Shown here: positions 19,557-24,472 of the stretch, piece after piece | Numbering within the stretch: the stretch's first letter is position 1 | Layout: every line of letters begins with the position of its first letter | Assembly (NCBI RefSeq): GCF_040938485.1 | Contig: NW_027271853.1 | Coordinates: 806,001 to 870,000 of the forward strand | Source of the DNA: Diadema antillarum | Lineage: Eukaryota | DNA length: 64,000 nt | Direction of reading: 5' to 3' | Notes under the pieces: generated by a model | Told to the model about the DNA's origin: nothing | Seen by the model: only the letters and a program-made list of their open reading frames with translations | Database searches by the model: none | Translations under genes and position numbers: made by a program

Positions 19557-24472
<4,916 letters not shown>

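Follow-up and report, generated by a model that had tools for sequence, protein, structure and literature searches.

A procathepsin L-like protein with Ser at position 25 from the sea urchin Diadema antillarum: a probable pseudoprotease belonging to an old clade of inactive cathepsins

We consider it likely (probability of roughly 0.8) that the cathepsin-like gene described here, which lies in the window (the whole 64,000-nucleotide stretch of Diadema antillarum DNA that was analyzed), encodes a noncatalytic pseudoprotease maintained by selection, and that it is the Diadema ortholog in an ancient clade of dead procathepsin L-like proteins. An initial annotation of the same DNA had proposed either a secreted or lysosomal pseudoprotease or a Ser-nucleophile variant with a silicatein-type Ser–His–Asn triad. 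The former proposal is borne out by an intact ORF, mature-domain dN/dS values of 0.12 to 0.22, and synteny and exons that are kept in four urchins. The latter is not, because Ser25 varies even among positional orthologs.

Three-frame reading combined with canonical splice joins gave a five-exon gene on the forward strand at 19557–24472, with 333 uninterrupted codons and introns that all start with GT and end with AG. The product, a 333-residue preprocathepsin L-like protein, is letter for letter identical over its full sequence to the NCBI protein “cathepsin J-like [Diadema antillarum]” (P0001 in the following), and an exhaustive HMMER search using exon 4 alone as query matched residues 225–303 of P0001 at 100%. 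Exon 1 (19557–19820) contains the start codon, the signal peptide (about residues 1–21), and most of the I29 propeptide (Pfam Inhibitor_I29, E = 4.5e-12) with the ERWNVN spacing (E50, R54, W57, N60, V64, and N68), and it ends at the donor CAG/gtatcg. The GNFD motif reads G-L-N-A-R-S-D in Diadema, its phenylalanine being changed to Arg. Exon 2 (20642–20834, 193 nt) carries the propeptide–mature linker, the mature N terminus LAPSFDWR, and the active-site block of 10 residues. The central helix and the L-domain are encoded by exon 3 (22294–22508, 215 nt; Pfam Peptidase_C1, E = 5.9e-4), which contains a DCC motif (Cys56 and a new Cys57), a shortened loop without GCxGG, Cys95, the new cysteines of the FTC and GGLC motifs, and a CNNDSC motif with an N-x-S sequon. 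Exon 4 (23461–23698; Peptidase_C1, E = 1.9e-20) encodes the R-domain with Cys153, Asp158–His159, Asn175, and Trp177, and exon 5 (24381–24472; Peptidase_C1, E = 1.5e-6) the C-terminal strands, Cys200, and the stop codon. Based on these profile matches (I29 in exon 1; Peptidase_C1 in exons 3, 4, and 5), the protein belongs to family C1A and is cathepsin L-like. The preserved reading frame, signal peptide, and ERWNVN propeptide that the initial annotation had described are thus all present in the 333-codon ORF, by both the Pfam I29 match and the motif spacing.

The exon carrying the active site had been noted as absent from the ORF track, with an end at 20834 and a GT donor there. Both the end and the donor stand, and the start, at 20642, lies further upstream than had been implied. 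A separate exon at 20560–20735 in another frame was ruled out: the active-site frame is open upstream to the AG acceptor at 20640–20641, which joins exon 1 in phase 0 and gives P0001 exactly. Intron 1 contains an assembly gap of 154 N (20189–20342). The gap hides no missing exon: the gene model needs no sequence from it, and the D. setosum gene likewise consists of these five exons, its intron 1 being of comparable length. A different active-site exon, for example in the N gap, had been named as a possibility; searches with five canonical cathepsins (tblastn) and a six-frame motif scan detected, in the readable part of the window, no second, canonical exon of the CGSCW type. Neither did tblastn with the model and five canonical cathepsins detect tandem paralogs or a second cathepsin gene in this readable part.

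In the active-site block, Gln19 is kept (CAA, 20795–20797), and three of its neighbors are changed: position 22 from Cys to Leu (CTT, 20804–20806), position 25 from Cys to Ser (TCG, 20813–20815), and position 26 from Trp to Leu (CTC, 20816–20818). Further downstream, and likewise on the forward strand, His159 (CAT, 23626–23628), Asn175 (AAT, 23689–23691), and Trp177 (TGG, 23695–23697) are kept, and a clade-specific Cys is found at papain position 173 (C299; TGC, 23683–23685). For positions 19, 25, 26, 159, 175, and 177, the residues first reported, and the coordinates where such were given, are all confirmed, as is the remark that TCG is not one substitution away from TGY, the two being separated by two substitutions. 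The protein lacks the catalytic Cys25 that defines an active C1A peptidase, having Ser at position 25 and Leu at positions 22 and 26, and the GCxGG loop and the Cys22–Cys63 staple are also lost. Judged by these residues, the gene product is a C1A homolog that would have no standing as an active peptidase.

An AlphaFold2 model based on an alignment of 20 relatives had a mean pLDDT of 85, with values below 50 only at the propeptide–mature linker (residues 92–120). The best Foldseek matches of this model were procathepsins S, K, and L (TM 0.76–0.79, probability 1.00, 33–36% identity), and a sequence search of the PDB returned procathepsins L, K, and S at E values of about 1e-50. A look-up in the ESM Atlas yielded generic cathepsin L and plant papain clusters only. 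The predicted structure indicates that the procathepsin L fold is genuine.

Homologs were gathered by word-indexed searches in which P0001, a profile of its relatives, and a hemichordate member served as queries, and were named through cluster look-ups. The clade that emerged comprises proteins from sea urchins (Diadema setosum, 88% identical; Lytechinus variegatus; L. pictus; and Strongylocentrotus purpuratus, with at least three paralogs), sea stars (Patiria and Acanthaster), hemichordates (Glandiceps and Ptychodera), a brachiopod (Lingula), a chiton (Liolophura), gastropods (several from Haliotis, and Babylonia and Physella), bivalves (Mercenaria, Ruditapes, Mya, Mactra, Tegillarca, Solemya, and Dreissena), and an annelid (Owenia). 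Against the clade profile, members score 341–464 bits and all other C1A proteins at most 276 bits. At least three dead-cathepsin paralogs of S. purpuratus are located on one scaffold, namely P0011/P0222 (XP_780996), P0235 (XP_030843443), and P0221 (XP_030843535). Two other database proteins, P0002 (873 aa) and P0003 (273 aa), contain just the C-terminal half of a cathepsin L domain, tandemly repeated two to eight times.

In a maximum likelihood tree (LG+C20; support given as ultrafast bootstrap/SH-aLRT), 32 homologs without Cys25, including the Diadema gene, fall on one side of a branch with 99/96 support (95/87 for the clade with an earlier taxon set). The canonical procathepsin L of D. antillarum (P0301) is placed apart from this clade, together with the canonical cathepsin L of S. 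purpuratus (100/100). The urchin subclade (100/95) has the order of the species tree, Diadema, (Lytechinus, Strongylocentrotus), and 21 sequences from lophotrochozoan phyla and further assemblies group together (92/92); the chiton sequence lies outside the latter group and adjoins the urchins (94/81). This branching pattern fits vertical descent from a gene predating the protostome–deuterostome split. Among the hits of the word-limited searches, there were no clade members from chordates or ecdysozoans. On the evidence of profile scores and tree, the Diadema gene is a member of an old, conserved clade of apparently inactive cathepsins with representatives in echinoderms, acorn worms, molluscs, brachiopods, and annelids. 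In public records, its members are labeled as ordinary cathepsins (cathepsin J-like, cathepsin L1, procathepsin L-like, or ervatamin-B-like). A search of the full-text literature, of partial coverage, returned no papers on the clade or on six of its accessions, and we provisionally regard the clade as apparently undescribed.

Clade-wide conservation was assessed in 38 rows, some of which are near-duplicates. Position 25 is occupied by Ala (16 rows), Ser (13), Val (6), or Pro (3), and never by Cys. Likewise, Trp is never found at position 26, and position 22 is Met, Ile, or Leu in 32 of the 38 rows, with Cys in a single one (P0089, an Acanthaster paralog). Throughout the clade, the GCxGG loop, which contains Cys63 and the Gly65–Gly66 substrate-binding backbone, is exchanged for a shorter loop. 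Gln19 is present in all 38 rows, Asn175 and Trp177 in 37/37 each, and His159 in 35/38. The S. purpuratus paralog XP_780996 has Leu at position 159, which means that the His is dispensable in at least one copy.

The clade has also acquired five new cysteines, each present in 37 to 38 of the 38 rows and located in the motifs DCC, FxC, GGLC, CxNxSC, and WIC (C179, C192, C200, C219, and C299 in P0001, respectively). The second Cys of DCC corresponds to papain position 57 and that of WIC to position 173. Cys57 and the FxC cysteine are found as a pair in related groups, too, where the other three new cysteines are missing. The GGLC and CxNxSC cysteines accompany each other and, in the animal sequences compared, are confined to the clade. 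Based on this co-occurrence, we infer two new disulfides that would replace the lost Cys22–Cys63 staple, one connecting Cys57 to the FxC cysteine and the other connecting the GGLC cysteine to the second cysteine of CxNxSC. With two retained and two predicted new disulfides, the nine cysteines of the mature Diadema domain leave C299 without an obvious partner; this residue, two positions before Asn175, is conserved in 37 of the 38 rows. Additional cysteines are seen in camarodont urchins (after “AVAS”) and in several molluscs (in the central helix, ECVES). In most members, CxNx[S/T]C constitutes an N-glycosylation sequon, which fits a glycoprotein of the secretory pathway.

To quantify selection, coding sequences of the orthologs were rebuilt from the genomic loci, all translating exactly to the database proteins, and dN/dS was calculated according to Nei–Gojobori. 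Between D. antillarum and D. setosum (dS 0.24), dN/dS was 0.24 for the whole gene, 0.12 for the mature domain, and about 0.6 for the signal peptide plus propeptide. For the mature domain, we obtained 0.19 between Lytechinus (Ser25) and S. purpuratus (Ala25) and 0.22 between two Ala-bearing strongylocentrotid sequences, which shows that constraint on this domain is equal whether position 25 is Ser or Ala. The initial annotation had named a dN/dS near 1 with no expression as the mark of a decaying pseudogene; the mature-domain values are 0.12–0.22. From these substitution rates, the gene is under purifying selection in its mature domain and appears to show no sign of decay. In the four comparisons with usable dS, omega was 0.35–0.63 for the propeptide and linker versus 0.12–0.22 for the mature domain, indicating that constraint is concentrated on the latter.

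These rates bear on the idea that the I29 propeptide could be the functional part, with the dead domain merely carrying or scaffolding a propeptide that inhibits cathepsins. Free I29-like propeptides are known cathepsin inhibitors, and a dead enzyme cannot remove its own propeptide. Moreover, the I29 domain is retained in almost every full-length member of the clade, the ERWNVN spacing is intact in Diadema, and a partial motif check revealed N-x-F-x-D in other members. However, the evolutionary rate of the propeptide is three to five times that of the mature domain, and the GNFD phenylalanine is Arg in Diadema, and we regard this explanation as unlikely. A selected, noncatalytic mature domain is the reading that we prefer.

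Several observations could be taken to favor a working Ser25–His159–Asn175 triad, which would make the protein, in the Diadema/Lytechinus lineage at least, a Ser hydrolase (an esterase or a peptidase) or a condensing enzyme resembling silicateins. The Diadema protein does combine Ser25 with His159 and Asn175, as silicateins do, and Gln19 and Trp177 are intact; Ser is kept in D. setosum and Lytechinus. Silicateins keep the six disulfide cysteines. In the urchin protein, on the other hand, Trp26, the Cys22–Cys63 staple, and the Gly65–Gly66 loop are all lost, and one S. purpuratus paralog also lacks His159. Nor is the Ser conserved across orthologs, as would be expected of a silicatein-type nucleophile: the site is occupied by Ala in the positional ortholog of Strongylocentrotus and by Ala, Val, or Pro in other clade members, with purifying selection being equal. 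The codons at position 25 of the four urchin loci are TCG (D. antillarum and D. setosum), TCT (Lytechinus), and GCT (S. purpuratus), and Ser, Ala, Pro, and Val codons are one nucleotide apart (xCN/GTN). The presence of Ala, Ser, Val, or Pro indicates that the site accepts small residues and does not hold a conserved nucleophile.

The flanking residues point in the same direction. Silicateins need an A-S-Y flank and are more than 50% identical to human cathepsin L (PMC6233156), whereas the Diadema protein has the flank E-S-L and is 33–36% identical to the solved human procathepsins S, K, and L; the absence of the silicatein SY dipeptide had been recognized from the outset. Papain-type triads have N-delta geometry, and Ser nucleophiles are extremely rare in such an arrangement. 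The natural Ser variants reported among papain-like enzymes are the silicateins, which have little or no proteolytic activity, and a few parasite enzymes, the case of SERA5 being disputed (PMC9825947). Taken together, a functional triad is, in our judgment, very unlikely. The residue pattern suggests instead that Ser25 is an incidental filler, the local outcome of a loss of catalysis that is older and more widespread, and that it does not serve as a nucleophile of the silicatein type.

Other cathepsin L homologs with Ser25 were encountered in the same searches. P0268 from Apostichopus japonicus reads QGQCGASWAF, with Ser at position 25 and Cys22 and Trp26 kept. A coral-containing group, in which P0263 (Oculina patagonica) occurs with P0266 and P0313, reads QGQLGPSWAF and, within canonical metazoan cathepsin L, forms a clade of its own (100/98). 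P0271 (Blomia tropicalis, a mite) and P0288 (Tubulanus polymorphus) have Ser at position 25 as well, the mite protein keeping Trp26. With Trp26 retained, the sea cucumber and coral-group proteins come closer than the urchin gene to the silicatein type of substitution.

The genomic setting of the gene is conserved as well. All four urchin genes have five exons, with exons 2 and 3 being 193 and 215 nt in each. A TRIM-like gene lies upstream on the same strand in the window (RING exon at 2546–3205 and SPRY exon at 13314–14009, forward strand), and a TRIM-like neighbor (RING, B-box, and SPRY) is kept at this position and orientation in D. setosum, S. purpuratus, and L. variegatus, which supports positional orthology. 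At the D. setosum locus (L001), the last intron (14738–56965) measures about 42 kb, compared with 682 bp in the window, and a 68-nt fragment that duplicates part of the beginning of exon 4 is found at 14351–14418, about 80 nt upstream of the real exon. On the reverse strand of the window, at 38382–38744, an exon encodes the beginning of a domain of the trypsin-like serine protease type (Pfam Trypsin, E = 2.5e-14); in D. setosum, a large multi-trypsin gene is located downstream of the dead-cathepsin ortholog.

In public read assemblies, family members are encoded by intron-free, full-length contigs of about 1–2 kb, one from an urchin (L002) and one bivalve-like (L003). Since the genomic genes have four introns, these contigs represent transcripts, showing that relatives of the Diadema gene are transcribed. 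Although the catalytic Cys is absent and intron 1 contains an N gap, a decaying pseudogene, or an annotation or assembly artifact with the true active-site exon in that gap, is highly improbable in view of the intact 333-codon ORF with canonical splice pairs, the same five exons and an 88% identical protein at a mature dN/dS of 0.12 in D. setosum, the exon sizes and neighbors shared with the Lytechinus and Strongylocentrotus orthologs, the absence of a canonical CGSCW exon from the readable window, and the transcription of relatives.

In the mechanism that we propose for the noncatalytic pseudoprotease, the protein would be synthesized with its signal peptide and I29 propeptide and would fold like a procathepsin. 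Papain-type protease activity would be absent because the nucleophile, Cys25, is gone. Together with Cys25, the protein has lost Trp26, Cys22, and the Cys63/GCxGG loop with its Gly65–Gly66 substrate-binding backbone, which amounts to half of the substrate-binding cleft. The L-domain side of the cleft has been rebuilt and would be re-stapled by the two predicted disulfides. The R-domain side (Asp158–His159, Asn175, and Trp177) and Gln19 are retained, and conservation of this wall and of Gln19 suggests that the cleft region is still used. Being incapable of self-activation, the protein would either stay in its pro-form or be trimmed by other proteases. The product is most likely an N-glycosylated pseudoprotease, presumably secreted or endolysosomal, that would bind its partners and not cleave them.

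By analogy with other dead cathepsins, it is plausible that the protein would regulate, or act as a decoy for, cystatin-type inhibitors, active cathepsins, or peptide ligands, although we consider a specific decoy or binding function possible but doubtful. Given Ser in the two Diadema species and in Lytechinus and the near-invariant Gln19, His159, and Asn175, some residual chemistry beyond structure or binding could also exist. A broader proposal, to which we give a little less than even odds, is that the clade represents an undescribed family of disulfide-rewired, dead procathepsin L-like glycoproteins that arose before the protostome–deuterostome split, has been maintained by purifying selection in echinoderms, hemichordates, molluscs, brachiopods, and annelids, and has a specific, conserved nonproteolytic role. 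If this is true, the near-invariant half-site (Gln19, His159, Asn175, and Trp177) and the apparently unpaired Cys173 would point to binding of a ligand or inhibitor or to a nonpeptidase reaction.

Protease relatives without activity have often proved to be regulators, examples being iRhoms, SERA5, and cystatin-binding dead cathepsins. For the proteins studied here, automatic annotation would need correction, as a whole clade of marine invertebrate “cathepsin L-like” proteins appears to consist of strongly conserved nonproteases. The tempting link to silicateins and biomineralization is unsupported and is removed; what retains interest is an ancient and conserved family of dead cathepsins, which is now defined and tractable for functional study in sea urchin or sea star embryos.

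Nonpeptidase homologs have been described in several branches of the papain family. Demosponge silicateins share with the Diadema protein a cathepsin L fold with a propeptide, Ser25, His159, and Asn175. When compared by sequence features, the Diadema protein differs from them in lacking Cys22, Cys63, and the GCxGG loop, and in that the Ser varies among orthologs. Rodent testins, soybean P34, and TINAG/TINAGL1 have a papain fold in which Cys25 is lost (to Ser or Gly), and they are binding or matrix proteins. These proteins are either lineage-restricted (rodents, legumes) or cathepsin B-like, whereas members of the present clade come from both Ambulacraria and Lophotrochozoa and share a cysteine pattern peculiar to them. 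Within D. antillarum itself, P0301 (“procathepsin L-like [Diadema antillarum]”) resembles P0001 in domain architecture, fold, and approximate length, but it has QGQCGSCWAF, the GCEG-G loop, and WLVKNSW.

Two parasite systems provide further comparisons. A catalytically inactive cathepsin B1 paralog of Trichobilharzia regenti is reported to bind cystatin (PMC7054455), and it is the precedent for the binding mechanism that we propose. Like the urchin protein, it is a dead papain-family paralog that has been retained, and it is expressed, with a role as inhibitor sink; unlike the urchin protein, it is cathepsin B-like, parasite-specific, and recent, and cystatin binding by the urchin protein would be an analogy. 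Plasmodium SERA5 also has a papain-like domain with Ser in place of Cys; its proteolytic activity is disputed and its role is regulatory (PMC5500368, PMC9825947). SERA5 differs from the urchin protein in being apicomplexan, multidomain, and unrelated within C1A, and its Ser is conserved in Ser-type SERAs. Nonpeptidase C1A homologs are thus already known as a kind, and the present clade is set apart from them by its cysteine pattern and its span across several phyla.
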